Assembly: GCA_023515725.1 (NCBI GenBank)
Contig: JALDTO010000318.1
Location: 1-19,415 of the forward strand
Origin: Amoeboaphelidium protococcarum X5
Lineage: Eukaryota; Fungi; Aphelidiomycota
Direction: 5' to 3'
Length of the DNA: 19,415 nt
Below are positions 1 to 19,415 of the stretch, one piece after another. A program made the translations under genes and the position numbers. Each line of letters begins with the position of its first letter. The stretch's first letter is position 1. The notes under the pieces are model-generated. The model was given only the letters and a program-made list of their open reading frames with translations, was not told the origin of the DNA and made no database searches.

Positions 1-336
1 CCAGCCGTATCCAATGCAATGATCAACTAGTACAGCGCACCTGCACCTGTCGCTAACTCTGGAGTTGAAGTTCAGCAGTAATAGTAGTAGCAAGCTGTAA
101 GAGCAAGTTAGTAACAATTGGCACCGGAAGATGTCCGCGCCTCCGCGTAAAACATTGCTGCCATACTTTACAAGGCTTCTTTCGCGTATCACCCTGATGC
201 AGATGATGAGCTGTCCTTCGATGTCGGTGACAGCATTGTGGATGCTCAAGTCGTAGCCGAGGGATGGTTGTATGGTACGAATCAGCGCACCGGCAAAGCG
301 GGCCTTGTCCCTGAGCCATACGTGCAGAAAGTCTGA
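1..336 (+). CDS. 3' end of a protein with a Gln-rich linker and a C-terminal SH3 domain (LASP/nebulin-like SH3); 5'-partial
   Basis: Frame 1 with TAR=Gln reads ...VEVQQQQQQQAVRASQQQLAPED...YKASFAYHPDADDELSFDVGDSIVDAQVVAEGWLYGTNQRTGKAGLVPEPYVQKV, then TGA at 334-336. SH3 motifs ELSF, GW and GLVP..YV are present. Confidence 0.85.
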
Positions 337-882
337 ACTGATCATTCATTTTTCAAATGGCTGTTGATGAGTGTTGATCGTATCGGAAGTGTGTGTTTTT
401 TGGTACTAGAATGATGTTTCTTAATTGAAATGACTAAAATAGATTTGTCTCTTTGTTTCATGGTGATTTCTCCTTGAACACTGCATGAATGATGATGGCC
501 CTTCATTCTGGTGAAAGACTTTACGGTTAAAGATGGAGCGTTAAAATTTCTCCCTAAAATATAATTTCAGATTAGCTTCTCTTCGCACCAGAACTTTTTC
601 AGTATTAAAAGTGTCTATACACCCACAATAAATGCAAATATAATCTCGATTCATTGCGGACCAAGAGGGTGGATTTACGAAACGCGAAATGATCTTCAGT
701 AGAAACGTTCTTCAGTTGAGAGACTTTGCACAGAAGGAGATCTCAAGTCCAATCGCCTAGAAAACGTTTCATAGTGGAAACTATTAACTCTTTCGATTGT
801 TTGTTTGTTTGTTTGATTTCAAAAGTGCCTAGCCTATGTAGAAGCCACGTTGTCTTATTATTATTTTTTCACACAGCATTTG

Positions 883-902
883 GACTGACTGACTGACTGA
901 CT
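883..902. repeat. (GACT)5 microsatellite in the upstream region of the VIT-vWA gene; a (TTTG)n tract lies nearby at about 797-815
   Basis: Direct reading: gactgactgactgactgact. Confidence 0.9.
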
Positions 903-1070
903 GGGAAAATATCTTCACGCTCTCTTTCCCAGGCAACGTTAATTTATTCAGAGACTAATATAAACGACAAAGTTTGTTTCAACTTGGTAATTGGTATTCA
1001 TCGTATTGGTCTTACTTAATATACATCAATCAAATTGTAAAGTCAAAATAAAGTCAAATTATAATCAACT

Positions 1071-4018
1071 ATGGCCAGCAAGCAGATTGTGAATAAAGCT
1101 CCGTAAGAAGCCGGTTTGTACTTGGTTCCCTTGGTTTACACTGGACAAGGAGACGTTTTGGTTCCCACGGATCAGGTATCTTGTCAAGTTAATGGTAGGA
1201 ATCATTTTTTCATATCTCCTATATCACATCTTCTATTGCTGTTTATGCCTCTTTCGTTTATGAATGTGTAGTGATTAATCTCCTCTGCCATAATCGAGTA
1301 ACGTAAACTTTCAAGGTGAGTGCGATTTAGAATGCAGCAGACGTTGTTGGGGATGTTGAAGCAATCTATCGTTTGCCACTAGTCGATAGAGCTCTCATCA
1401 ACGGGCTGGAGATTAACATTGATGGAAGGAATATCACAACTTCCATCTCTGATGCTGATACCGGTAACAATCAAGAGGATATGATTGCCTAGATGGATAA
1501 GCCAAAGCGTGAATTGTTGCAGATCAATATGGGACAGTTGAAGGCCAACTCTATCGTTACCGTATCCATCTCTATGCTATATGAGCTAAAGAATTATAGT
1601 CAGCAGTGCGTCAATTACGTTATACCTACCCATCTGATTGGTAAGGACTGGAAGGAGGACCATAAGGTTTCTTTCAAGGCCAGTATTCATTTCTAGATGC
1701 TGTCTCAGATTAAGAATATTGTTTCCTCCGTACCAGATGCGCAAATTGAACTCAATTGTGGTAGAGATGCTAATAAGCGCGTAGTGAAGGAGGAAGATAA
1801 GGCTAGACATGCACAAGTGAACGTCGATTTGAAGTTGTCTAAAGAAGACTTGTCATCTGAGCACACTCTGTCCATTTATACTGCAAAGTGGGGCTAGTCT
1901 ATGGCTATTACTGAGTTCAATCCCAAGACTAAAACTTACTGCACTATGCTGGATCTGTGCCCATAATTCAAACAGGGAGAAGGTGAGATGAAGTGTGACT
2001 TTGTTATTTGTTTTGATATGACTTCTCAGATGGTTGGAGGTAAAGCGTATAGAATGAAATAAGCTATTTAAGTGCTGTTGAAGTCGCTACCTGAAGACTG
2101 TTTCTTCAACCTAATTGGATTCGGTGCTGGCTGTGCTGCCATGTAACCTTATAAGAGCTTAATAAATGGCCCTGATGCTCAGGAAATGGCCACTGCTTTC
2201 TTGGATGGAATACAGCCAGACATGGGTGCTAAGCGTGATTTAGAAGTGTTTAAGAATGCTTTTACTGAAATCAAGCTGCAGCCTAATTATCGCCGTCAAA
2301 TTTTTGTGATTACTGGTGGAGAGTTTGAGAAGGCTGATGAAGTGCTCAAGTATGTTCGTAGCTAGGCTAATGGTGGTAGAGGAAGATTGTTTTGTGTTGG
2401 CGTTGGTAAAGCGTCAAATCCGGCGTTCTTGGAGAAGTTGGGCTCTTATGGAAGTGGCGAAGCATACTTTGTCAATTCTCAGGATAGATTGGAGCTGAAG
2501 ATGTTGGCCATGTTGAAGAAGGCTATGTAGCACGGTGCTCGTAATTTCAGAGTGCGCTGGGTTGACAACAAGGTGTTTTAATCTGCGGCGCCATCCACTC
2601 CTGAGAGCGCCAGTGTGAAGAGTAAAGATGGATCCGCGAAGACTTTCGGTATGAAGGACTTGTTTACTGTGGATGAAGCTGATGTGGCTAAATAAGAGTC
2701 TTATAAGTTTGACGAACATGTTTTATGTCAGACCCCAGCCGATATTCATTCCCTGTACGTTGGTAAGAGAACCTCAGTGTTTGCATTCACCAAGTTACCT
2801 GCGCAGCTGCTGAAAGAGCTATTCCTGTCTGCTGCCTCCACGGAAGGCCCACAGGATTTCACGGCTGAGGTTGTGAACTCTGTCATGATTGTCGGTGAGA
2901 ATGATGTGCCAATCATTCATACTATGGCTGCAAAGCGCTTGATCAATGATTTGGAAGACAATCGCTCCTACTTTCATATTGGTCTTCCTTTTCATCCGAC
3001 ACTGGAGGCTAAGAAGAGATCTCCATCTCATGTTGATGCAAAAGATATCTCTGCGACCATTGTCAAGTTAGGCAAGGAGTACAATTTGATGACTTCAAAG
3101 ACTTCGCTGATTGCCACTAATGAGTTTGGAGAGTAGTTGAAGAAGACAGATCTGAGTATTAATTGGATCATTCCAAGTCATCGCACGGCTAATGCTAAGG
3201 CTTTAAGTCCACGTGGTCAGACTCCGAGTCCGTCACCAATAAAGTCTCAACTGAGCGACAAAAAGGATTCAAGTTCCGGTGATGTTAAAGGATTAGGATC
3301 TCGCAGCAGTCGCACCAGTTTGTTCTCGTTCAAGCGCAAAGATTTGAGTAAGACTCCAGCCAATGCTCCTGCACCTAGTGTTGACTCGGGTAAAGGATCA
3401 TCTTTAGCTCCGGGTGGTGGTCAGTCGTTTGTAGAGACGCATATTTCGTAGGGATCAGATGGTGGAGCTAAGATGTCTTAACTTTCCAGTGATCATTACG
3501 GCAATACTTCCGCTTCCATGTCTAGAATCTCGGCTGATGGAGAAGGAACAGCTACGGAGGCTTCCAACTTTTAGGAACCGCCAGCGAATGACAAGTATTC
3601 AATTATTGTGTCTCTGCTACGTTTTCAACAAGCTGATGGCTCTTTTGTGTGGAAGAATGAACTGGTTGATCAATTGTCTCTACTGCCTTAAGCACCCGGT
3701 CAACAACAATAGTCGGACTAAAATCAGGCCTCTCTAGCTGAGGATGATAAGAGCACGATATATCGCAACGACATTTCCGGAAAGGTGAATAGCGGTAAGT
3801 CTTAGGTAATTCTGGATCCTAATGCAGAAGAATAGCAAGCAGTGTGGGCCACGCTTCTGGTGCTAGCTTATTTTGAAATCCATCTACCGGGTGAACGTGA
3901 CATTATTGCATAGAGTGAAAAGAAGGCCAGCAAGTGGTTGGATTAGCCTCAGTAACTTGGCTATTTGAGCGTTTCCAAAGATTAGGCTGTCGATGCTGCA
4001 AGATCCGTCTACGCCTGA
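1071..4018 (+). CDS. VIT + vWA domain protein (VWA5A/PARP4/ITIH-like family), about 956 aa; exons 1071-1194 and 1272-4018
   Basis: ATG at 1071. VIT-like RVTQTF...VEAIYRLPL...INGLEINIDGR. vWA-like DFVICFDMTSQM...LLKSLPEDCFFNLIGFG, RQIFVITGGE and RLFCVGVG. VWA5A-type C-terminal motifs IHTMAAKRLI, FQQADGSF and VWATLLVLAYF...KKASKWL. One frame joins the track ORFs at 1493, 1697, 2777 and 3137 through TAA/TAG. TGA at 4016-4018. Confidence 0.9.
1195..1271 (+). other. Spliceosomal intron (77 nt, phase 1) in the VIT-vWA gene
   Basis: GTAGGA...pyrimidine-rich...TGTAG. Removing it joins QVSCQVN-V-INLLCHNRVTQ in frame with the long downstream ORF. Confidence 0.8.
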
Positions 4019-4502
4019 AGTTCGCATGGTCGTAAGTGCGTTAATTACGATACAGTTGGTATTTATGATGATATGAGGTGAATAAAGGTTGAATAATAAA
4101 GTAGGTTGTGGTGTACGGTATGTTGATTTTACTTACAATAATTGATAGTTGCCGCGTTTACAATTAATTGAATCCAGTCTTTGATGTTGTGGAGTAACAA
4201 CACTACATCACCGGATCTGTACTTGATTCTCAAAAATTATATCTAGCGTAATGTTTGTATTGTTCATGTTTTTATCACGGCCAGGCTCGACTATTTAACG
4301 TTCACACAGCTTTGTTTGATTTCAATATAATAATACGCCTTGGCAACGGATCTTGCTCGATCAGCTCAGCTTTGAGACTCAATGGTATTGGTAATGTTTG
4401 TTTTGGCCTGTGCTTGCTTGCCCAGTCTGTTGTCTACTCTTTTTCTCATCCGACTCTGCACATTAAGACTTTAGCTATACTTGCATTTTTGACTTACTTA
4501 TA

Positions 4503-7058
4503 ATGACAGTGTTTAGCAAGGCTTTAACCTGTGCATTGCTGTTTACCGTTTCCCAGTTTACTCATGCTGCGGTGCCTGTCATTGGTGGCGGGTCAACTTT
4601 TCAGACTGATATTTAGGTCATCTTTAATGATTATTATGCTTTCTCTTTGAATTCCACGGGTGTGGTGAGTTACAATTCTACTGGAAGTTCAGCGGGACTT
4701 AGTTAGACTATTGCTGGATTGTACATGTTTGGTGGTTCTGATTTCCGTCCTCCAGTTGGTTCAGCTGTGCAGGCTATCCCTATCTACGCCGGTGGTGTGT
4801 CTGTGGTTTACAACGTCCCTGAGTTGTAATCTGCAAACATAAACTTGAGGCTATCTCGCAGTGCTCTGGTTGGTATATTTAGTGGTCAGGTTAAAAAATG
4901 GAATGATCCCCTGATTGTGGCTGCCAATCCTTTGGCGACCTCTATACTGCCTGATTAGAACATTACCATCGTTCGTCGTTCCGATGGTAGTGGTACGACT
5001 TTTGCCTTCTCATCAGGTCTATCATCAGTTGATAGTACAACCTGGGTATATGGTGGAAACACAGTGTTCAACTGGACTTGGGCAAAGAATATTGCTGCTG
5101 CTGGTAGTTCTGGTGTGGCTAAGAATGTTCTCGGATTGAGGTACAGTATTGGATATGTCGATTCTTACATTGCCACCGATTATCAGATCTAGTCGGCCTT
5201 CATATAGAACAAGAAGCTGGAATACATTGAGCCGTCCTCTCAGTCTATCAATGCTGGCTTTCAGCGTATCCAAGGCGCTAATTTCGATACTCAAGACTTT
5301 ATTGATGTGGATGAGACTGGTGCATACCCGTTCGTCGTGTTTACGTACAATCTGCTGAATGATAATATGAAGCAATTCTTCTCCATCACTCAAGTGCGTG
5401 AGACGTTGAAGTATCTGTATTGGTGTTTGACTGATAATTTTGCCACCAACTCGCTGCTTGCCAATACTCTGATTCCTGTTTAATAGAATATTAGAGATGT
5501 CAACTTGAATTTGCTCAAGACTTACAAGTATGGTGATGTTCAAGTTTTCGGTTAATCTCCGTGTGACGCTCCCAACTAGTGCAAGAATGGTGGTTAGTGC
5601 AGTGTTATCTACCCGTTTACTGATCCTGTGGTGAAGTGCAAGTGTAATGCTCTGTTCACTAATGTCGTTAATAGCGATTGTTCTGAGCTATCACCAGGAG
5701 AATTTGTCGATCTCCCTTAATTGCCTGCAGTCTTGATGACCATATTCGCTTTGGCTGGCATCTTGTACACCATAGTCATGGGTCTCATGCTGGTGACCAG
5801 AGCTGATCATCCGGTGGTGAAAGCTATGAGCCCGTTCTTTTGCTTCTGGATTCTTGCTGGCTGTATCTTAAGTTATGTCTCTGTGTTCCTGTTCATCGGA
5901 GAGCCTAACAATTTTACGTGTGGTGCACGTCCTTGGTTCCTCTCTACAGCTTTCGGTGCCGTGTTTGGTATGCTTGCTGCAAAGACATGGCGTATCTACT
6001 CAATTTTTGGTAATGTTAAGCGTATGGAGGAGAGTCTTACTAACTTGAATCTATTCATTCGCTTCGGAGGTGTCGTGCTGAGTAGTGAATGGCTATTGGC
6101 CATCATATGGTCCGGTGCGGGTATCCTGTAGCCTTACAATACATTCTCTGAGAACGGACTTAGCGTGGCTAGAACTTGTGCGTCTTTGAATGGAGATTTG
6201 TAGACGGCCATGTCTGTCTTATTCTACCTCTCTAATGCAGCCTTGTTGGCTTTCTGTATTTATCTTGCTTACAAGACGCGTAATTATCAGTATCAGTACA
6301 ATGAGAATCGTGAAATCTCTTTGACCCTGTCTCTGATCACGTTCCAACTGGTGATTGGTATCCCTTTGACGTATGTTATCGCCTTGGATCATGAAGCTGT
6401 TTTTGTTATCACAGCTGTGACTCTCACTCTGGTGCCGTTCACTGTGACTACAGTCATGTTTGGACCAAAGTTTTACAGCCTTTACTTGGCCAAATTCTTC
6501 AAGAAGGAGGGCGCTTATGATATTGGAAAGTCCACGTTTGGTGCTAGTGCTACGAATGCCTCCACTGCAACTGGAGGTGCCGCATTGAGAAAGAGTACTG
6601 AAATTCTACCATCTGGACTGTCTTTCTGGCATTGCAGTCTGAAGCGTAATCGTATCGGTTCTCCGTGGTTTATGTGCACCATTGCCATTGTACCGGAGAT
6701 CAACTGGATTGCATTTGTCGACGATTGGGCCAATTCCTCCCCTAAAGTGTATGAAGTCTTCAAGTTTACCGATGTGAGTTTCTCTGATCAAGTGCCGAAA
6801 GGTCAGGACCCGGAGACAAGTACACTGCTGAAAGTGGGCGCTGTTGAATACATCATGGAGGTGAAGACTAAAGAGTACATGGCCAAGTTCAACAAGGTGC
6901 TATCAAAAGTGCAACACGGCGCCGAAGCCAATGTCAAGATTAAGAATACTGCCACAGGTGAGAGTGTCAAGCAGCCAGCAACTATTGATCGATCGGCCAA
7001 GATTGATAGAACTGCAAATGAGAAAAAGATGACCATTGTTGAGTCGGATAAACTATGA
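4503..7058 (+). CDS. Receptor A: signal peptide + PstS-type phosphate-binding domain + EGF-like domain + class C (7tm_3) GPCR + cytoplasmic domain, 851 aa, intronless
   Basis: Signal-like MTVFSKALTCALLFTVSQFTHA. PstS motifs GGGSTF, YNSTGSSAG, FGGSD, VVYNVP, IFSGQVKKWNDP, RRSDGSGTT, SIGYVD and AYPF. Six-Cys EGF at 5562-5681. 7TM motifs HPVVKAMSP, CGARPW, AKTWRIYSIF, YNENREI and FGPK. One frame with no TGA until 7056-7058. Confidence 0.93.
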
Positions 7059-7320
7059 TGATGTATCTGGTCGCACTATGATACTTAAAGGATGATGATT
7101 ATTGATTAAAGGTTTATAATAAAGTTTAAAGTTGATAATGATAGCTGTCTTTTTTTACAATGTACTGTATAAATAAAGGCAAAACTTCAACGTATGGAAA
7201 TTCTATTGCATCAAATTCTAAACTTTATCAACCTTTATTACCACTTTCATCAAGTAAACCAAATTCTTTCACCTCAGTCATTATTAATTTCATCATAGCG
7301 AGTTGATACATTCATGTTGT

Positions 7321-9003
7321 TCAATCAGCCAAAATAGACTTTATCTCGGCAGACTGCATAAATCTAGGGAAGCTGGCCTTTTGCATCAGCTGGAAAATAT
7401 GATCATACGCATCACGCAGAACATTAATGTCAAGAGAGTTTGGATTTGATTCTGCTGCCTTAATGTCAGCCAGGATTGTATCACGCGTACCTGCTAGCAA
7501 ATTCAACTCATTAGGACTTCCAATGGCGACAAAATTGTAACAAATCTCTTTACACTTGATGAAATACTCCGTGCGATCCATAATAGACTCCAGCTCTTGA
7601 CAGGCCAAGTAGAACTTCAAGTTCTCAGTTGAGTAATCCTTCTCCAAGAAGGTCATGAACCACTTCAATCCAAGAGGATCCTGTAGAACATCACGCAACC
7701 CCAAATTCCACATACGCGCATGACTAAATGAAGGAGTATCTGGCACAGGTACCTCGACATACTTCTCCGTCTCAGACTTATCCCACGGGTTGTTCTTGTG
7801 CAAGTCAGAGCGAACCAGCGGATCAAATCTTGTATACATGTCAATACGCGTAATAAGATTCTTGACCGCCGTGGAGGTTGGCAGACGATAGATGTTCAGA
7901 CAGGCAGTCAGATTATCCACCTACTTCTTAAGATAAGCCTCCACTTTGGCTTCATCTTTCAACTTCTTCTCGTACTTCTCCGGGCTATAGCGGTGCTTCT
8001 TGATCTTGGTAATTGGCGTCTCCTCAATGTAAAGGCGACTGGCTTTCAACGGTCTCTGCACCTTCCAGAAGGCAGCCTCACGCAACTCAAACAACTTCTT
8101 CTCACCACGGTCCAGCCTGCTAAAATGAGCCTTCTGCTTGTCCTTCATCTCTCTGATCAGGTCCTATTTGAACTCAACAGCCTGTCCCAGGGTGGCAAGG
8201 CGCTCCTTCTCCTCAGAGTTCAAGTTGGACTTACGCTTCAAGTACAGGTAGTAATCCAGATCGGAGGTTTCCCAGAAACGGCTAGGATAAAAGAAGTCAG
8301 CCTAGTACGTGTACAAGGAGTCGTCTTCACGATACACCTGCTGATTATCATCGACCGAAATTATGTAGCCGTTGTCAGTCATGTTTTAGATGATCAACTT
8401 GGCATCGGCCGGGTTCAGAGCATTTAACTCCTTCAAGAACCACACGGCAATATCATAACCAGTAGCGCACAGTGGCTGAACATTAAGCAATCCTTTGATG
8501 TCCTTAAAGTGGACTCCATCCACGGGATCGCGCAATTTACGCAGCAACTTCTCGTAACGCTCAAAGCGGGCCTTGACAGCGAAAGATTACCAGCGAGGCG
8601 CCACAGACAGCAGCTTAGATTAAAGCAATGCCAGCTTATAGTCCTTCTCCTCGACATAGATCTCCTTCTTACCAGACACGGTAGTGTTAATAGATGTGCC
8701 CGCATTTTTGCTATTCAACGATTCACTCGATATGCTGACCCTACTTCCCTTGGTGCCAGAGAAAGCCTTACTGATGATCGAGGTCTGCTTGTTATTCTTG
8801 GATACGACGGACATGTTGTCATCACCAACGGTGCTATCTCTTGTGGTTGATGTCATGATATCTCCACCAAGAGATGGTTATGGCGATATACCAGAGCTGG
8901 CAGCAGATGCAGTCTTTTTGCGGTAGTAAGATTGCTCCTATTGTTTCATGGCCAGCTTCTTCAGTGCAGCCTTGGTCTCTTACAAATCTTCGGTATCACT
9001 CAT
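7321..9003 (-). CDS. R7-family-like regulator of G-protein signalling (DEP-DHEX-GGL-RGS; RGS6/7/9/11/EGL-10-like), 560 aa, intronless
   Basis: ATG at 9003, with an in-frame TGA upstream. DEP: LRDPVDGV...ATGYDIAVWF...NGYII...DDSLYTYQADFFYPS. DHEX: DYYLYL...EAAFWKVQRP. GGL: LNIYRLPTSTAVKNLI...FDPLV...NNPW. RGS: LRDVLQDPLG...FLEKDYSTENLKFY...ELNL...HIFQLMQKASFPRF. TGA at 7323-7321. Confidence 0.9.
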
Positions 9004-9614
9004 GTTAGTATTGATTGTATTGCTAGTGGTGCTTTAAAAGACAAATACTTCCAAATTGGTCAATCAGTATAAGTCAATATAGTTACAGATATACACCAAT
9101 TGTAAATGAAGAGGAAACGTTGCCTACTTCAGTCAGTGAGTAAAAGTTTCATGATGAGCTAATAAACAATTGCAGTTTTACTGTTTGGTATAAAAATAAA
9201 CTCTGATGGAAACCTCACCAAGTTCCCACAGTTTATGCCCGTAACTATGTAGGATAAACTCGGTTCTTAGATGCAATATCAAGTGTTGATATTTGGAAGC
9301 ATTAATGCGTGCGGTACATTAAATTCCATCCAGTGTGTTTTATGTGTTACCGTATAACACGATTCCGTACCATACTATTTAAACTCGGTATGTATATTTT
9401 GGTAGATGTGGCAGTTGATTACGCAAAAGTCAGCTGTCAACAGTCAAACTGATGCTAATACACTATGAAATATGACGTATCTATCATTTATACAGCACCA
9501 AGATACCTTTCACAAAATGGAAATATGTTTGATATCATCATAATTTATAACCACTTTATATCATCTTTTATTTTAATCTTCCACATCGTCTTAATTAATG
9601 TAACCTTAAGAGAA

Positions 9615-12160
9615 TCAATTGTCATCCACAACGCTGGAACTGATCGATGACGATGCCTTGGTAGCAACGGCCTTGTTCAACTCCAACGCAGTCTGCTGAA
9701 TACGAGGGAAGAACTTCTTGAATCTAGCCATCATATCCTTGTTCTTACTCTCCAATGAATACTCACCGGTTGGGTGTTTAATCACACAACTCTCAGGAGT
9801 ATCACCGTCAGCCAATTAACACTCGGTCAATTTCAAAGACTCGTACACTTTCAACTGGGAGCTGGTCATATCTTCAACCGCGGCGAACCAGTTCAACTCT
9901 GGAATCACAAATATCACAGCTTACAACCAGGCAGCACCTAAACGCTTCTTACGGATGGAGAACTGCCAGAAACTCAAACCAGACTGACTGACATCACCAA
10001 AATTCTTATTACCTGAATTCTCAGCCGTAGCCGTACGAGCAAAGATGGAGTTGGACATATCATAGGCCAAACTCTTTCTAAAGAAGCGGGCAAAATACAA
10101 CTCATAAACCTTGGAGCCAAACATGATCGTCGTGATGAAGAGCGGGCACAAGATAAGCAGCAAGCACGTAAGAATATTAATGGAATTGTAATCCAGCGAT
10201 GGCAAGTACACCAGGGGCAGTCCAACAAGCAGAGGCAGAATGGTGGTATAGATGGCGAATGAGATCGACTTGGACTCATTGAACTTTTCACCAGCATATC
10301 TAGTCTAAAATGCGACATAAATACATGCACAAAGCAAGATTGCATTAAATACGTACAACAGAGCACTCATAGTAGACGCAACGGTAGCATTGCCAGAGAC
10401 ACAAGTCTTCACGACAAAATTAGACGCATTCAGCACTACCGTGGGCTTCAAAGGTGATGCTGCCACCCAGATGATGCTCAACAACAACTCCAGACCACAA
10501 ATGACTGATCCAAAACGCAACAATAGACTTACATCAGATAATGATTAATTCACACGACGCAGATTACCAAAAATGGTGTACACACGATAATTCTTCGCAG
10601 TCATCATACCAAACACCAGACCAAATGCAATGGACAACCAAAATGGACGCGCATTACACATAAAATCATTCGGCTCACCCAAGAATAAGAACACTCCTGT
10701 ATAACTAATGGTACAACCACCCAGAATCAGTAAACTAAAGGTTGGTGAGATGGCCTTGATCAATGGATGATTTCTACGGAACACCAACATCATAGCAACC
10801 ACACCATTGTATATAATACCGGATATGGCAAGAAACAATAGGAAACCATTAATCGGCTCTTGGTAAGTAATAAACAGGGACGGCGTTAATTCGCTACAAT
10901 CGTTTTTGAGATTATTGGTGTACAACTTGGGACAGCTACATCTTATAGTAGCCGGAATGAAAGGGCTCGTCTTTACCGGACACACACCATCATTCTGGCA
11001 CAAGCCATCAAAATCACAGACAGAGGTACCATACAATGGTTTAGAGTCACTGTACACAAACGACTGTAGTGTTGAGATAGCATTCTACAAGTTGGCATTA
11101 TCCAGCTGCACGTAAGAGAATCTAGAGATAACACGCTAAGCATACGTATCAGTGTACGTCCAGTAAATGTAACGCATGACAGATCTAAACTGATCAACGT
11201 TATAGTATCTAGACACATTCTTATTCAGAGCATAGAACGTGAACGTGGTAATAGGATACGAGCCACTCGCGGTAGAATCAACATTACCAAGCGTCTCAAA
11301 GTCACCCTGTGCAGCGGCAAGAGCAATCTGAGCAGAAGTCTAGTTGGCCACAGTGAGCTCATTCTGTCTGTTATACAGACGAGCGTAATCAATCTACTTT
11401 GTCGCAGCATCAGCCAAATCAAGATATCCAACAGAGTAAGCATTACCAATGATGTTCTAAACCACACCGATGGAACCGGCACCACGAGCAAAAGGTGTCA
11501 AACCAGCATTGCCCCAATTAGGAAGACCATTCACGCCAACTTTACTGCTCCACTCCGGAGACACCTTGGTCAGAAACTGTGTGAATGCAGTAGTAGTTCC
11601 AGAACTGTCATTTCGCACAATGACTTTGATATCCTGGTTGACGCTAGAAAGACTAGGATTGTTTGCCACTAAAGCGGGATCGTTCCATCTAGTGATAGTG
11701 CCATTGAATATCTTCACAACAGTCATGCGGTCCATGATAAGGGAACAACTTTGAGAAGAACATCCAATATCAGGCACATTATAAGTGATAACAATCGCAG
11801 AGCCAAAGGTGGGCAGAGTGACAAAAGAGTTGGCAAACTCAGGTGCGATAACAGATGGCAAAGCATCAGTACTACCCCAAGCAGCACCACCATTCGCAGC
11901 TGTTCTCACACCAGACCCGGAACCAACTGCAGAATACTGAATAGAAGTATTGGCATAACTGAAGGGTAAACTGTTGTATGACAGAGCCCAATCAAACTAA
12001 ACTTGAGCCTGCAACGTAGACCCAGCGCCTTAAAGATCTACACAATACGCATTTATTAGAGATTATTCGAAACAGCTATTTTATCAATGCTCTATCAAAA
12101 CTTACTCGCTTATATAAGAGTTGCATACAATGCGGCAAAAGCAAATTTAGTTAGTATCAT
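9615..12160 (-). CDS. Receptor B: paralog of receptor A (signal peptide + PstS + EGF-like + class C 7TM + cytoplasmic domain), about 825 aa; exons 12160-12106 and 12037-9615
   Basis: MILTKFAFAALYATLIQA-NLQGAGSTL. PstS motifs YSAVGSGSG, WGSTD, ITYNVP, IFNGTITRWNDP, VRNDSSGTT, SVGYLD and SYPI. EGF at 11018-10896. 7TM motifs HPLIKAISP, CNARPF, AKNYRVYTIF, FNESKSI and FGSK. The track ORFs starting at 11909, 11057, 10523, 10211 and 9815 share one frame. TGA at 9617-9615. Confidence 0.92.
12038..12105 (-). other. Spliceosomal intron (68 nt, phase 1) between the signal-peptide exon and the PstS domain of receptor B
   Basis: Minus strand reads GTAAGT...CTAAT (branch-point-like)...TGTAG. It contains an in-frame TGA, and splicing restores the frame into LQGAGSTL. 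Confidence 0.88.
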
Positions 12161-13108
12161 CTTTCAAACAATGTACTGAATGATTTAACAGGTGGATAGT
12201 TATTGATGATGATGATGATATATATATGTTTAAGCAGAGTCTAGTGATGTATGTTAAGTAATAGTCAATACGCTGATGGATTAAGCCTATATCAGAAATA
12301 TAATAATCAGAATACTCGCCAGGCAGCACGACTGGACAAGGTGATGATTGTATAGATTTTATCAAATGAGAAGGATGGGAAAGCCCATAAATCGATTGTT
12401 TGTTGTACAGTAATTTGCCGTTCGTTCGTTCTCTCATGATTACTTTGTAAAGTAATACACATAATCTTTCTGCATAGCAACGGCGTAATCAGTTGGAACA
12501 GTGGTCTGGCTATATAAATATCGGCAATCAGTTCTTACAAAGTCGATGAATTAAATGTTTGGCTTTTGAAGAAAATACACTTTACAGATGATGTGACTAA
12601 ACTGGCGAAAAATGTACCAGCACTGTATACGAAAGATTGACCACGTTGATTATTCGCTCAAAGCATGGTTGTAATGCAAGTAAGCAAAGTATCACGCGTT
12701 CCTAAAAAGAGTTGAGCAGATAAAGAAATAACATAGGCGTGTAAAGTACGAATACCATTCAGTACCGCAAAGTTTTATAGGAAGAAGGAGAACAGTGTTA
12801 ATGAAGTCCTGATGCAGAGCCCGAACTTTCCCCCTGTACCTGAATGCTATTTTTTTGTGATACCATCTACCTCCTCTGTGTAAGATCATCATCACGAACG
12901 CGCACAATCACTCTCTGGAACAAGCCGACGAGTTCTCTCATCTTTGTCCGCCCGCCCGTTCGTTCGCCGATCTCTCTTTTCCTTATTCTCGCCTTTAAAT
13001 AGAAAGATTTCCCTTTTACTCTCTTTCGTCAGCCGATTCTTGTTAAATCTATACAGCAAATTGATAATACTAGGTGGCTCACACACACACTCTCTCTATA
13101 TAAATATA

Positions 13109-14398
13109 ATGCCATCACCCGCAAAGCCTTGGGAATCTGCAGCGATTTCCAATCAAATAGATAGCTAGTAGTAAAGCTAATCCACAATGGTCGATTCTAC
13201 TGCTGCTAACACTTCTGCTCCTCCATTGCCTGTGCAAGATTATCAGGATAGTGGCACTTATGGTGCTCAGTCTTCCATTTACAATAATAATAACAATCTA
13301 ATGTCCAGGTATGGAGGCAATAATTATCGATATGGATTAAATGGTGGCTACAATAGCAACATCTCGTCATATGGAGCAGCAGCGTATTCTTCTCCTTATT
13401 CATCACCGTACAATTCTGCGTATTCCTCGTCGTATGGCTACAATAGCTCTCCTTATGGCTCATATGGCTATGGGAATAGATATGGCGGTGGAATTTCATA
13501 CGGTATGGGAGGCTACAATCAGTAGTAGTAGAATATGTTGTAATCTCAATAGGGTGGTCCCTCGAATCCGCTCATGGTTCTGGAGCACGCGGTGTAAATA
13601 TTGTCCTCTGTGACGCACCTGTTAGATTCCACCATAATGGCCACTCATAGCTCTTTCATGGGAGTTATTGGATTGATTGAACAGGTCGGTGTGCTCAAGT
13701 CTATTGTCGGAGGTGTAGTTGGCTTGAAGTGGTTATCTACATTCATGGGATTGTCTTCTAGAGATTATTAGTCACATGGTTAATCCACGATGAGGTCTGC
13801 ATTAAGTGTTGATGAGTTTAATAATAATAATAATGGTGCTGGTGGTTTAAATTCATCATAGTAGATGCAATAAAGAAACAGTAGAAGGCGGAGTAGATTT
13901 TTTAGATCTAAATCCTTCATGATTATGGTTGCATTGGCTGTCATTTTCGTAATACCATGGCTAATGAAAAGAGTATAGAGGCGGAGATAGTTGTAATAGA
14001 CTTAGTAGTAGGAGTAGTTGTCACTTGAGAAGTCATAAACCACTGAAAGTTCTAATAAGGTTAATAATACACTGGATATAACGTATCCTGATGGTGTTAA
14101 ATAGAATACGGATGGTTCGTAGATTGAGTTTGCTAGAGCACTTTATGACTTCACGGCGCGTAATTAGAATGAGATTTCATTTAAAAAGGGAGATCTGATA
14201 GCTGTTACTTTCAAAGGTGGTGATAATAGTCAAAGTAATTTATTGCAATAGAATACTGATCCCTCTTGGTGGAGAGGCAAGAAACGCCAAGGACATATTG
14301 GCTACTTTCCATCTAATTATGTGTCTCTTATTGGAAAGTAGGTGGACATATCTGCCGATTAGTTTATCACTTAGTCGAAAGGTTAATAAGTGTAATGA
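13109..14398 (+). CDS. PEX13: Peroxin-13 (peroxisomal import docking/pore protein), 429 aa, intronless
   Basis: N-terminal MPSPAKPWE, a Tyr/Gly/Ser-rich YG region, the Pex13 core LLDSTIMATHSSFMGVIG and a TM segment FMIMVALAVIFVIPWLM. C-terminal SH3 EFARALYDF...EISFKKGD...WWRG...IGYFPSNYV. TGA at 14396-14398. Confidence 0.93.
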
Positions 14399-14564
14399 GA
14401 ATTTATTTTCTAAGTTTGTACAATGTGAATGAAAACTTTAACAAATAAATCATATTCAAAATGTATTATTAATGACTGTTATAGCTTCACTTTGATATAT
14501 TGTAATCCTTAATCAAAACTTATTATTAAGATCATCTTACTACAGTTATACAATGGTTTATTTT

Positions 14565-17468
14565 TCAAATCAGAGGTGGAGGTAAATCTACAGAAGAACT
14601 TAAGATCTTCTCCACCTGACTCTGATCATTTTCATTGTCATCAATAGTGGCGACCAATGTGGTGGATATAAATGGCAGATTCTACTGCTGTGCATTGGGC
14701 AATCCTATGAAGTCCGACGGTGGAGCAGGCCGTATTGACATTCTAAGAGCAGCAGAACTTGCAGATGATGATGATGAAGATGGTGGTGTAGTCGCCCCAT
14801 TAGATAAAGACTCTTTTGATCTCCCGGGTCGACTTACTCGGTCATTCACGTTGAAATTAGTCTCTGTTTACTATGACGCTTATTATTCAACATTTGTCGC
14901 CTGAGTCGATGATGACAACTGCGGCGATTACGGACCATGACCATCCATCATCAGCAGTCTCGACCTTCTCTTTTACTCATCGTGCTTCTCTAAAATGCGC
15001 TTCTTCAGCATCTCATCCAGGACTCCATTACCGGGCATTTCGCGTCTCAATGGAGGGTAATCAGGCACGGGAGGAGCAGGACGTCTAGAGGTGGGAGTAT
15101 GTACGCCATTAGACGTGGAAATCATACTAAATCTATTATTTTGATTTTGATTAATAACTTAAGAGTGACGGCGCGATACAGATTAAACGTCTACGGTTAA
15201 GGTGGGAGATTGCAGTGAAGTACTACCTTGTGCAATAGGCGAGGATGGAGGAGTCTTATCACCACTTCTAAGGCTTAGTCGTTTATCATTTAGACTATTG
15301 TTGATATCATTATTGTTATTACTACCAACGCTATACCGCAGACTCTCTTTCAATCGATTCAACTCAGACTCCAACTTCTGGACCATGGCACTCAATTTCT
15401 CATTCTACTTTACCAGTTTACTATTCTCATCCATAAGCTTCGAATTCTTCTTCTGCAACTATTCACATTCGTCAGTATATGAAGACTCTTGCAATGTAGA
15501 CTAACGTTACTGGGATGTACGCAAACTATTAATGTCCAATACCAATTCGATATCAGAGCATATAACTTCCAGAAAATTAGATGGCACTAGACCATGCATC
15601 TCAATCTATGCCTATCGACTGCTACCACCAATCTGCTCACACGTCCACCATCCCTCTTTATGGAAATCAAAACTGGAATCAGCACGCGCATAGATAATAA
15701 AAAACTAATTAACATCAAATGACAACTCTTAGAGACCTTGGGCATCCACCACATCACTTGCTGATTAATACGCATATATAGACTTGGCGATACCAACAAC
15801 TTTGTACTGAGTGCTACCAATTTAGCTCTAACTTGCCCACCATAATCCAGAGTCCCCAGACTAAAAAAACTTGGAGCACAGATCAGATACAGACATGAAC
15901 AGCATATCCACATGCTTAATCATATCCAGAACAACGGCATTGATATAAGCTGCATTCATCACCATCTACTAGGCACTAGTCTCTTCGGCCAATTCACATC
16001 TGAGAATATTAGGAGCCAGCACAGTGGCCATATTCTATAGAGACATTTTGTTATGAGCGCTATTACTCTCTGCCGATACTAAACTACTAAACTGTAACAA
16101 TGTGCATAGCAAGTCTCTATTCTCGGACGGCAAACTGTTGACCAGGACATACATCTACCATAGACGTTATGCGCCACTTTTAATTTGATCCGTAGACTAT
16201 TGAGACTGAGCACATGCAATAAACGCATCAAATAGATCAAATGTCAACAGAGGATCAGGCAATTCACGAAGAAATAACTTGACCACACCAGCAACAGCAT
16301 GTCCATCACCCAGATTTATATAATCCAAAAGAGCATCTTCACCACCGACCAGAAACTTCATTCCACCATCAGGATCATTATCGAAAAGGTTCTTCAACTT
16401 TAACACGGTGGATTACGCGCCACTTAATCTGAAAATTCCTTCAGTCTACAATTCATACTTTTTCAAATGCCTCAGCAATACTTTAATGATGACAGGGATC
16501 TGAGTACCGGGAACTTTTGGCACAGCATAAAGTGGAATGTCAAATGTGCTATTGATCGAACTCTGAGGTGACGAATATTTACCATGTGCAGATTTACCAC
16601 TACCTTTACTATGGCCATGGCTGACAATCTTGGTCAACTTCTTCATGGTACTGGAGGACATTTTCTTGGTCTCTTAAAAAAATTGGCCAACTGTTATAGA
16701 TGCAGATGATGTGGTGGAATAGTTACCGGCTTAAAGCTCGGATTAAATCTACTGATTATTAATATCTTTAGATACAGAGTGAAGAGATGGAGACGACTTG
16801 TGAGAGGACAATAACGTAATATCTGACGCACAATCACTCAGCTGTTACTTATAAGCACCTGATGATGATGATGTTTACTACTACTAAACTGTGAGCAGTG
16901 ATGGCGATTAGTCATTCTAAGCCATTGCAGATGATGTCTGATGGGAAATCTTACCATCCGCTGCAGAGTTAACATCACCACTGTGCATGCTGAGAGTGGT
17001 AAACTGCTTCTATAAATTCTACTAATCTGCACGCCTCAATTTCCTCAGAGTCTTGGACTTTTCACCGGCAGCTTTCACCAATGCCTAATTACTATTGCTG
17101 GTAATATAATTATTAGCATTATTACTCTTCTTATTAGAAACTTCTTATTTCAACAATGAATGGTCAAATTTGACCAACTAGATCGCGTCATTGTCCAGCC
17201 ACGAGAATTGCGGGTATTAGTTCAGAGATAGGTTATGATCGAGCATCAATCCACTGCCTCCATCATCAGTGCTGTTATTATGAGATTCAGTAGTAGATGC
17301 AGAAGGCTTGTAAAGAGTACAATCTCGCATAAATTCCGCGTCTAGATTACACTTCTTCTGCACCAGATGCATCACCGTCTTTAGAGGATCATCCCGCCCC
17401 ACACGAATACACTTCATCACACCCAGCTCTGGGATCTCCACACGCAAAATAACACTATCCTGAGTCAT
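14565..17468 (-). CDS. Rho GTPase-activating protein with N-terminal FERM-F0/SPN-like ubiquitin fold, RhoGAP, SH3, coiled coil and Pro-rich tail, 967 aa, intronless
   Basis: One frame from ATG 17468 to TGA 14567-14565. RhoGAP: IPVII...EGIFRLSG (Arg finger), VAGVVKLFLRELPDPLL, LPSENR and NKMSLQNMATVLAPNIL. SH3: AKSIYAY...ELSF...EGWW...GLVPSNFL at about 15800-15560. Heptad-like EQLQKKNSKLMDENSKL...LESELNRLK, and RRPAPPVP. Confidence 0.9.
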
Positions 17469-17898
17469 AATAATCAATGTATAAGTAAGAATATTATTCT
17501 AGTAATCAAACCAGGCACACAAAATTTCTAAATTAGGCAATGACTGAATTTGGATAATAAATAAGGCAAAAGAACAACTCCTGTAACACGCGTTGTCCTG
17601 TTTACTGTACAGTCAGCCTTGTCGAATTGATGTTGCCGCGTGTGGGGAATGGAAGGGAAAATGGTGTAAAATGGGCGCAACGAAACACCACAAAAAGAGC
17701 GCCCCTGAGAATATTTCTTGACGCAGCTCACATTTTGATTGATTCTTTACTAGTGGCTGGCTGTTTCAGAATCTAATGAAATTCTAGTGTGATTTTATAC
17801 GTGTGATTTAATACTCCATTAGCCGTCTTCAAAACAGTATAATACTGTAACAATCATAAAGATCAAAGAGCAAACTTTCTATGATATAGTAAACAAAA

Positions 17899-19011
17899 TC
17901 AAACATTATATTATTACTATTATTAGTAGTTGTTGGCAGCATTCTAGTTGTTATGGTACATGTTCAGAAAATAGTCCAATTCGTACATGAGAATGTCTTT
18001 AGCATAGTGTATGGTGACCGGCGTGGTGGGATAGAAGTTGACTGTGCGATCCCACTCCCTCCACATTTCAATGTCGCGCGGCAGGTGAGGAGTGAACGCG
18101 TCATTGTGACTCAGCGTAACGTTAAAATGCTCTTTCACACACCAACTGAGAACCACATCTTCACCCAGCGATTCCTCAATCACCTGGCCATTATTGAGTC
18201 GCCGGCAGCGGTTAACATTGGGTGCAAACTGAGATAAGAATTTACTGCTCAACACATAGCCAGCACCGCCCGACAGGATATAATTATCTCCCGTAAACGC
18301 AGTCTTTATCCTTCGCCCAATTACATAAGGCTTAGATTGCGGATCTTTATACTAGCTCAACATTCGGACCAGACTGGGAATCAGTACGCTGGTATCATCA
18401 TCAATCTTTAAGAACCATTTATACTTTATTCTAGGCAAGCGCATTTTATCGATCGAATTATCTGAATCTAAAGACACCTGATGTTTGTACAAATACTTCC
18501 ACATTGTCAGTGTCTTCTCTGTGATGTGATGTGAATTTTACTCCCATGTAGGTAGCTGGATGAACATATGTCTAGGTGGAGCGGTGAGATTACGATTGAG
18601 GAATGGGTGTACGTTACTACCATACTTGTTGTATCTAGAGTTACCGGCACCACTACTCCCGCTATCACCCAGATCTTTACCGAGATTAAAAATGTCTTCG
18701 TAATCCATAGACAAGCCCGTCCTTCCAATAAAGAATCTGATAGTCACCTGCGACCGCTCCGGTGCTCCCCAAGTATTAAATATAGCAAGACATCGCTGAA
18801 TAGTCTATGGAGAAGTCATCACAGCTATGAATATATCTCTTCCATTTTCGCGGATTTCTCTGTCCAACACTGCTTGATAATACATATTCAGCTGAAATGA
18901 TGTAGCAAGTAGGATAATCACAACAACCAGTACAATCACTGGCGATACCCAACTCCTCTTTACCATTTTCAATTTCCTGAATCTAGCGTTTAATTAAAAA
19001 TCATAAGCCAT
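17899..19011 (-). CDS. GT31 (Fringe/C1GALT1-like) beta-1,3-glycosyltransferase, type II membrane protein, about 370 aa (alternative start 18966)
   Basis: Basic N-tail and TM anchor VIVLVVVIILLA. Motifs IFIAVMTSPQ...NTWG, KWFLKIDDDT (DxD), VIGRR, LSGGAGYVLS, EDVVLSWC and VTIHY. TGA at 17901-17899. Confidence 0.88.
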
Positions 19012-19332
19012 CTCTTTTCCGCTATTTTTATGAATATTAGATGCTTTTTAATCTATTTAGGATCTGACAGCGTTACGTAATGTAGAGCAAGAAAATCTAA
19101 TAGAAACTTACGGCAAATAGGAGAGAGAGAGAAGGAAAGCGATCGGGAAAACGCGTTACGCCGCCACTCAAATCAGCCAAAGTAAAACAAACAAACAAAG
19201 CATTTTGGTCAGCAGATCGTTCTCAAACTTATGATATGGTTATTCAAACGTTCATAACGGAAATGTTGATGAGCAAAACGTGATAATAATAATAGATTAC
19301 TATATCTTAAAGTTCTTGGGCACCGTCCGTAA

Positions 19333-19415
19333 TCATTATTCAGGACCTTGGCCGTGGATAATCACATCGTCAATCTTGAGAATCATCTTGACCATTTGGG
19401 TGGCCAGCAGTAATT
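19333..19415 (-). CDS. CCT5: 3' end of chaperonin CCT/TRiC epsilon subunit; 5'-partial
   Basis: LLLATQMVKMILKIDDVIIHGQGPEQ, then TGA. LATQMV.MILKIDD is the CCT5-type C-terminal motif. Confidence 0.85.

Follow-up and report, generated by a model that had tools for sequence, protein, structure and literature searches.

PstS-fused class C receptors beside an R7-type RGS gene in an aphelid: candidate sensors of extracellular phosphate

Introduction

When two receptor genes flank the gene for a G-protein signaling regulator (RGS), do the three form a signaling module, or are they simply neighbors on the chromosome? This question is raised by a locus of Amoeboaphelidium protococcarum X5 (GenBank assembly GCA_023515725.1, contig JALDTO010000318.1, positions 1 to 19,415 of the forward strand; the whole 19,415-nucleotide stretch is called the window below), in which receptor gene A, an RGS gene and receptor gene B follow one another. 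A sequence-only reading had described A and B as G-protein-coupled receptors (GPCRs) of class C that are fused to the phosphate-binding protein PstS, the middle gene as an R7-type RGS, the source as an algal parasitoid, and the trio as a phosphate-sensing unit analogous to the animal receptors GPR158 and GPR179 with their RGS partner. The description of the parts was accurate, and the organism is indeed an aphelid; the unit as such lost support. We consider it moderately probable that A and B are class C GPCRs of an old aphelid and early-fungal family, most likely sensing extracellular inorganic phosphate, and that the R7 RGS is a separately acting neighbor, an ancestral opisthokont regulator within a syntenic block whose order has been shuffled locally (LASP, VIT, A, RGS, B).

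Results

The window was read with genetic code 6, in which TAA and TAG encode glutamine. Codes 1, 4, 12 and 26 were rejected, since they give no long open reading frames (ORFs) in the window and only code 6 opens long frames. Receptor A (4503-7058, + strand) is a single exon of 851 amino acids (aa) with a signal peptide, a PstS ectodomain, an EGF-like linker, a class C seven-transmembrane (7TM) domain and a PH fold. The RGS gene (9003-7321, − strand) is an ORF of 560 aa, and receptor B (12160-12106 plus 12037-9615, − strand) encodes 825 aa in two exons. Exon 1 of B (12106-12160) carries a predicted signal peptide and is placed identically by the 825-aa NCBI models in other assemblies; exon 2 (9615-12037) holds the PstS domain, the EGF-like linker, the 7TM domain and a PH-like tail. 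The 68-nt intron between them (12038-12105, GT..AG) is confirmed by contigs of X13, a run recorded as RNA, and of X8, a spliced run whose type is unrecorded; both leave out exactly these positions. The three genes are therefore contiguous as originally read, with gaps of 262 bp (A-RGS) and 611 bp (RGS-B). They had also been called invisible to standard-code gene calling. The standard code does fragment all three into pieces of at most 284 aa, so that part stands; GenBank, however, already annotates the trio as hypothetical proteins, and NCBI gene calls in other assemblies give the same three protein lengths.

All three genes are transcribed in one sample, and apparently separately, because run X8 gives three separate transcript contigs: one for A ending near 7135, one for the RGS gene (7234-9051) and a set covering 9565-12216 (contig depth is no measure of expression level). 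These contigs give no sign of a polycistronic or fused transcript. Measured against a copy in another assembly, dN/dS is 0.044 for A, 0.026 for B and 0.055 for the RGS gene. All three are under purifying selection, and with values below 0.06 we rejected pseudogene status. Receptor A was searched at full length through database record P0151 (99% to KAI3651901.1), and its best database relative, at 98.7% identity, is annotated as A. protococcarum. For spliced B and the read-through RGS, the searches used stop-free pieces, and the joined forms entered pairwise comparisons and trees.

The ectodomain of A (4569-5537, +) matches PstS by both phmmer and Foldseek. Against PstS 2z22, phmmer gave E 2.7e-31, and structurally PstS was the best match as well, with a Foldseek E of 8e-19, a TM of 0.85 by target and an rmsd of about 3 Å. 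The PstS domain of B (about 12037-11043, −) was found by sequence search with a piece (E 1.9e-22). Pfam matched PBP_like_2 and 7tm_3 in full-length A and in pieces of B. A has the type II PstS fold where mGlu, GABA-B and CaSR have a type I Venus flytrap (ANF) ectodomain. The phosphate site is complete in both receptors: residues T32, F33, S62, D80 and R159 of A correspond to T10, F11, S38, D56 and R135 of E. coli PstS, and D161, S163, G164 and T165 to D137, S139, G140 and T141, so that nine of nine positions are kept in A, as they are in B. In PstS, D56 selects phosphate over sulfate, and its equivalent is retained in A and B alike. The aphelid domain thus resembles bacterial PstS (E. coli 1ixh, Yersinia 2z22) in fold, in sequence (about 25% identity) and in all nine site residues, and it differs in being fused to a GPCR instead of serving an ABC importer. 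CaSR is described as a class C GPCR responsive to extracellular phosphate (PMC11252437). Its type I Venus flytrap binds phosphate at anion sites, whereas in A and B a dedicated phosphate-binding protein makes up the whole sensor domain.

Other family members are less uniform at this site, which bears on what the ligand is. Chytrid members keep most site residues, with variation at the D137 position and further losses in some; Calcarisporiella members also keep most and have Glu at the D56 position. One alternative to inorganic phosphate is that the receptors do signal, in response to a phosphorylated or polyanionic host cue (a sugar phosphate, a polyphosphate end or a phosphorylated wall polymer) with which zoospores find or recognize algae. 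The parasitoid lifestyle, the chytrid variation and the varied type II binding domains of other early-fungal class C receptors (PMC3251606, PMC5168858) would suit such a cue. The aphelid sites, on the other hand, equal PstS at every one of the nine positions. The PstS cleft buries bare phosphate, which also counts against a host cue, and the family is not parasite-specific because it occurs in the saprotrophs Spizellomyces and Calcarisporiella. We consider a host cue possible and rather unlikely.

In a quick tree with limited sampling, a single branch (support 100) splits the eukaryotic PstS domains from 30 prokaryotic matches. This pattern fits one old capture of the domain, for which no donor can be named. 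A recent bacterial capture was rejected, since fungi have the domain too.

Between sensor and membrane, A has an EGF-like linker with six cysteines, C354-C393 (5562-5681, +); that of B (about 11018-10896, −) lies in exon 2. The linker cysteines are at least 90% conserved in 30 family members, and Pfam gives a weak EGF match in one homolog. The class C 7TM domain of A (5712-6500, +) matches 7tm_3 with E 3.6e-41 and 141.9 bits against a Pfam cut-off of 33.5; that of B (about 10865-10077, −) scores 85.3 bits as a piece. Motifs of the type associated with G-protein coupling are present. Receptor A has K3.50 (in KTWR), the Glu of intracellular loop 3 (ICL3) and FGPK in transmembrane helix 7 (TM7); K3.50, the ICL3 Glu and the cysteines of TM3 and extracellular loop 2 (ECL2) are kept in both receptors. 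At the TM7 motif FxPK, B reads FGSK and its ortholog in a related aphelid (described below) FGGK. The best PDB matches of the 7TM domain are mGlu2 and GABA-B2, and the top 60 do not include GPR158.

The cytoplasmic tail of A (6615-6926, +) has no Pfam, PDB-sequence or ESM Atlas-feature match and was identified by folding only. Its AlphaFold2 (AF2) model (pLDDT, predicted local distance difference test, 87.5) has the seven-strand sandwich and C-terminal helix of the PH-domain superfamily. Foldseek with residues 698-812 gave E 5e-5 to the Dbs PH domain, with the GRK2 PH domain also among the top matches, and VIA supported the fold with Z 12.6 and rmsd 2.2 over 101 residues. Between TM7 and this fold, residues 667-704 have pLDDT below 50, as in a disordered stretch, and contain one 7-residue helix; B aligns with A there. 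The tail of B (about 9977-9663, −) is predicted to be PH-like from its 41% identity to the folded tail of A. Copies of A. protococcarum show 100% identity in the PH domain at a pS of about 0.24. In B, this domain is better conserved than any other part (66% identity to the ortholog vs 51% for PstS), and the tail is recognizable across the receptor family.

A full HMMER scan with a piece of B found about 26 proteins that also carry a PstS-like domain; named members belong to many chytrids, to Paraphysoderma and to Calcarisporiella. The ESM Atlas holds a cluster of 50 mostly chytrid proteins with the PBP_like_2 plus 7tm_3 make-up. Among the 30 matches looked up, which are not a genome count, there was no further Amoeboaphelidium paralog, a hint of a single family locus per subgenome. 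A and B are 36% identical over residues 28-807, nearly their whole length, and by this measure are paralogs. The repeat search of the window found nothing except short chance matches and this paralogy, faintly. In the 7TM tree (like the PstS tree, a quick search without bootstrap), A and B group in an aphelid clade (SH-aLRT 98) together with one ortholog of each from the related aphelid, and this clade adjoins a chytrid clade (90). Judged from these sequences, A and B are a local aphelid duplication. The "two receptors" of the locus therefore count as one event, and under our favored account local duplication is why A and B lie close together.

Three observations on other loci belong here. A Calcarisporiella family gene (L009:10001-13782) is annotated as two adjacent ORFs of 518 and 500 aa, split within the 7TM domain, which are probably one gene. 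In Spizellomyces (L010:19000-22274), the PstS-type receptor SPPG_09437 has an ANF-type class C receptor 6 kb away, and there is an arrestin-C-like gene just upstream. On a 625-kb metagenome contig from ENA, an intronless gene (L006:10001-14350) encodes 1449 aa with two PBP-like domains, 7tm_3 and an RGS box; it adjoins a 1205-aa PBP-7tm_3 gene (L006:5299-8916), and most neighbors have no Pfam match. The fusion protein has degenerate phosphate motifs and an RGS box that is not R7-type, and it falls outside the family clade. JGI metagenome contigs scanned with RGS and receptor patterns yielded no loci.

The protein between the receptors is, to judge by its domains, an R7-type RGS, as had been proposed. 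Its domains, all on the − strand, are DEP (about 8565-8329; best PDB match RGS7 24-78, E 0.006), DHEX (about 8295-8023), the G-gamma-like GGL domain (about 7911-7774) and the RGS box (about 7698-7351); the last three were located by Pfam, and the GGL-RGS piece has RGS7 as its best PDB match (E 4.7e-24). The DEP, DHEX and GGL pieces score under the Pfam cut-offs, yet the order DEP-DHEX-GGL-RGS is correct. This order and the RGS7 matches are shared with the R7 family (RGS6/7/9/11; chytrid RGS7, PMC3971589), from which the aphelid protein departs by a low-complexity N-terminal extension of about 140 aa and by an Ala in place of Asp in its last RGS helix. It retains both the catalytic Asn and the E-N motif. 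A homolog search with the longest stop-free piece found 1 protein, with length limits that hide full-length R7 relatives. The Ala that replaces the RGS7 Asp (window 7369-7383, RGS residues about 541-545) is present in both aphelids. The corresponding residue of RGS4, Asp163, contacts switch I of G-alpha, and the change might alter G-alpha preference.

Do the receptors act on G proteins at all? They could signal mainly without G-protein activation, with the PH tail as output or scaffold, or with B, which lacks the TM7 proline, as a silent dimer partner. The family-wide PH domain and its conservation in B, the FGSK and FGGK motifs of B and its ortholog, and the Ala in the RGS helix of both aphelids would be consistent with this. 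Set against them, A and B alike have K3.50, the ICL3 Glu, the TM3-ECL2 cysteines and the ligand site, and the RGS has its catalytic Asn and E-N motif. We judge signaling of this kind unlikely.

The remaining alternative is the selected module of the sequence-only reading, in which A and B directly recruit the neighboring R7 RGS (with a G-beta subunit) as GPR158 and GPR179 do, and phosphate tunes its GTPase-activating (GAP) activity. GPR158 binds the DHEX domain of RGS7 through a Leu/Ile-rich cytoplasmic two-helix coiled coil conserved only in GPR179 (PMC8611064). The aphelid proteins share with GPR158/GPR179-RGS7-G-beta-5 a class C 7TM domain, a sensor that is not a Venus flytrap, an EGF-like linker and an R7 RGS in the same cell. 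Of the features specific to GPR158, only the EGF-like linker was found. The sensor is PstS, not Cache/PAS; the 7TM domain is closer to mGlu2 and GABA-B2; and where GPR158 has its RGS-binding coiled coil, A and B are predicted to have a PH fold. G-beta-5, moreover, is reported to stem from a duplication in holozoans (PMC3971589). In animals, the genes work without being linked.

We examined whether linkage itself is conserved. The order PSME4-IMD-LASP-VIT-A-RGS-B-PEX13-RhoGAP is fixed in three other A. protococcarum copies, which is same-species synteny. One copy (L002:15089-16152, GCA_023515725.1) has a Tc1/mariner-type transposase gene between RGS and B that is absent from the window, L001 and L003. 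Contigs of SRR9661224 (L005, L007 and L008), which we take to be from one related aphelid, have in-frame TAA/TAG and similar GC3 and carry orthologs of all three genes that are 55-60% identical. There, the first VIT exon (56% identity, pairwise E 1.7e-12) lies 163 bp after RGS on the same strand, and a convergent LASP gene follows B (85% identity). Both the A-RGS and the RGS-B junctions are broken on the 3' sides covered by these contigs, which end inside coding regions. LASP and VIT are retained in this aphelid neighborhood just as RGS and the receptors are. At four non-aphelid fungal family loci (two of Calcarisporiella, one each of Spizellomyces and Cladochytrium), there is no RGS within 10 kb. 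In the one relative and four fungal loci compared, the adjacency expected of a conserved functional cluster was thus confined to A. protococcarum, and the three-gene cluster is probably ordinary microsynteny with neutral linkage to RGS.

The other genes around the trio are unrelated to it, as had been noted: LASP, VIT/VWA, PEX13, RhoGAP-SH3 and a Fringe-like glycosyltransferase. The VIT/VWA gene (1071-4018, +) has an intron after about 1195, and a long code-6 ORF from 893 reads through intron and leader. PEX13 lies at about 13100-14398 (+), the RhoGAP-SH3 gene at 14565-17468 (−) and the Fringe-like gene at 17899-19167 (−).

Discussion

The separation of receptors and RGS that we favor has to be weighed against several points, most of which would suit the module. 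The prior chance that one of the four nearest genes encodes an R7 protein is about 0.001-0.002 (assuming 6,500-13,000 genes), so the adjacency is unlikely a priori; the chance rises to 0.03-0.12 if any of 50-200 signaling genes counts. In the related aphelid, RGS and B keep a common neighborhood, and with the 5' neighbor lying beyond the contig the two could be head-to-head; the three SRR9661224 contigs were assigned to one aphelid by shared run, code and GC3 only. A distant, independent fusion of PBP-7tm_3 to an RGS box exists. For the module there are also the EGF-like linker like that of GPR158, the full DEP-DHEX-GGL-RGS protein and the transcription of all three genes in one run. The missing coiled coil, the dissimilar 7TM domain, the two broken junctions with equal retention of unrelated LASP and VIT, the four fungal loci free of linkage and the reported origin of G-beta-5 stand on the other side, and with A and B counted as one event we consider the module quite unlikely. 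The position of the RGS gene does not look like the mark of a dedicated complex, and the RGS looks like a chromosomal neighbor rather than a proven partner. As to the ligand, phosphate binding and signaling by A and B are predicted from sequence, and a PstS site of nanomolar-to-micromolar affinity could stay permanently occupied or be structural.

If A and B are phosphate receptors acting apart from their neighbor, the observed domains, folds and intact ligand residues suggest how they might work. Phosphate would close the two-lobed PstS domain, and the EGF linker, braced by disulfides, would pass this closure on to a dimeric 7TM domain, possibly an A/B heterodimer. The 7TM dimer would then switch a heterotrimeric G protein, and the PH tail may dock G-beta-gamma, a phosphoinositide or an effector. 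The R7 RGS may turn off the same G-alpha. We think it very unlikely, a step below the module itself, that A and B form a phosphate-gated heterodimer that holds the R7 RGS through PH tails or loops, in a region kept by selection, and guides zoospores to phosphate-rich algal hosts. Were it so, a fungal relative would have evolved its own counterpart of GPR158-RGS7 independently.

Parts of this family are on record. The PBP_like_2 plus 7tm_3 pair was listed for Spizellomyces in 2012, e.g., SPPG_06488, and early-fungal class C receptors, including gut-fungal ones, carry varied type II binding domains (PMC3251606, PMC5168858). A and B resemble these Glutamate-family receptors in the fusion of 7tm_3 to a type II periplasmic-binding domain; the papers give domain lists, with no identification of PstS or an intact site, no PH tail, no aphelids and no ligand test. 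The architecture of chytrid RGS7 has likewise been known since 2014 (PMC3971589). Our literature search (PstS-GPCR, Amoeboaphelidium GPCR, class C plus PH) returned nothing relevant on the phosphate site or PH tail, and a GPCR with a folded PH domain in its tail was not found in the literature searched. A dual RNA-seq paper on the Amoeboaphelidium parasite makes no mention of phosphate or G proteins. We know of no characterized GPCR with a dedicated phosphate-binding protein as its sensor domain.

The value of the locus accordingly lies in the receptors, an uncharacterized PstS-EGF-7TM-PH family of aphelids, chytrids, Paraphysoderma and Calcarisporiella; short of a demonstrated interaction, the three-gene cluster contributes little. 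If the receptors report phosphate, they would make it possible to test directly how zoosporic fungi and aphelids, the latter pests of algal ponds, read their nutrient status or find hosts, and they would offer a natural template for a phosphate biosensor.

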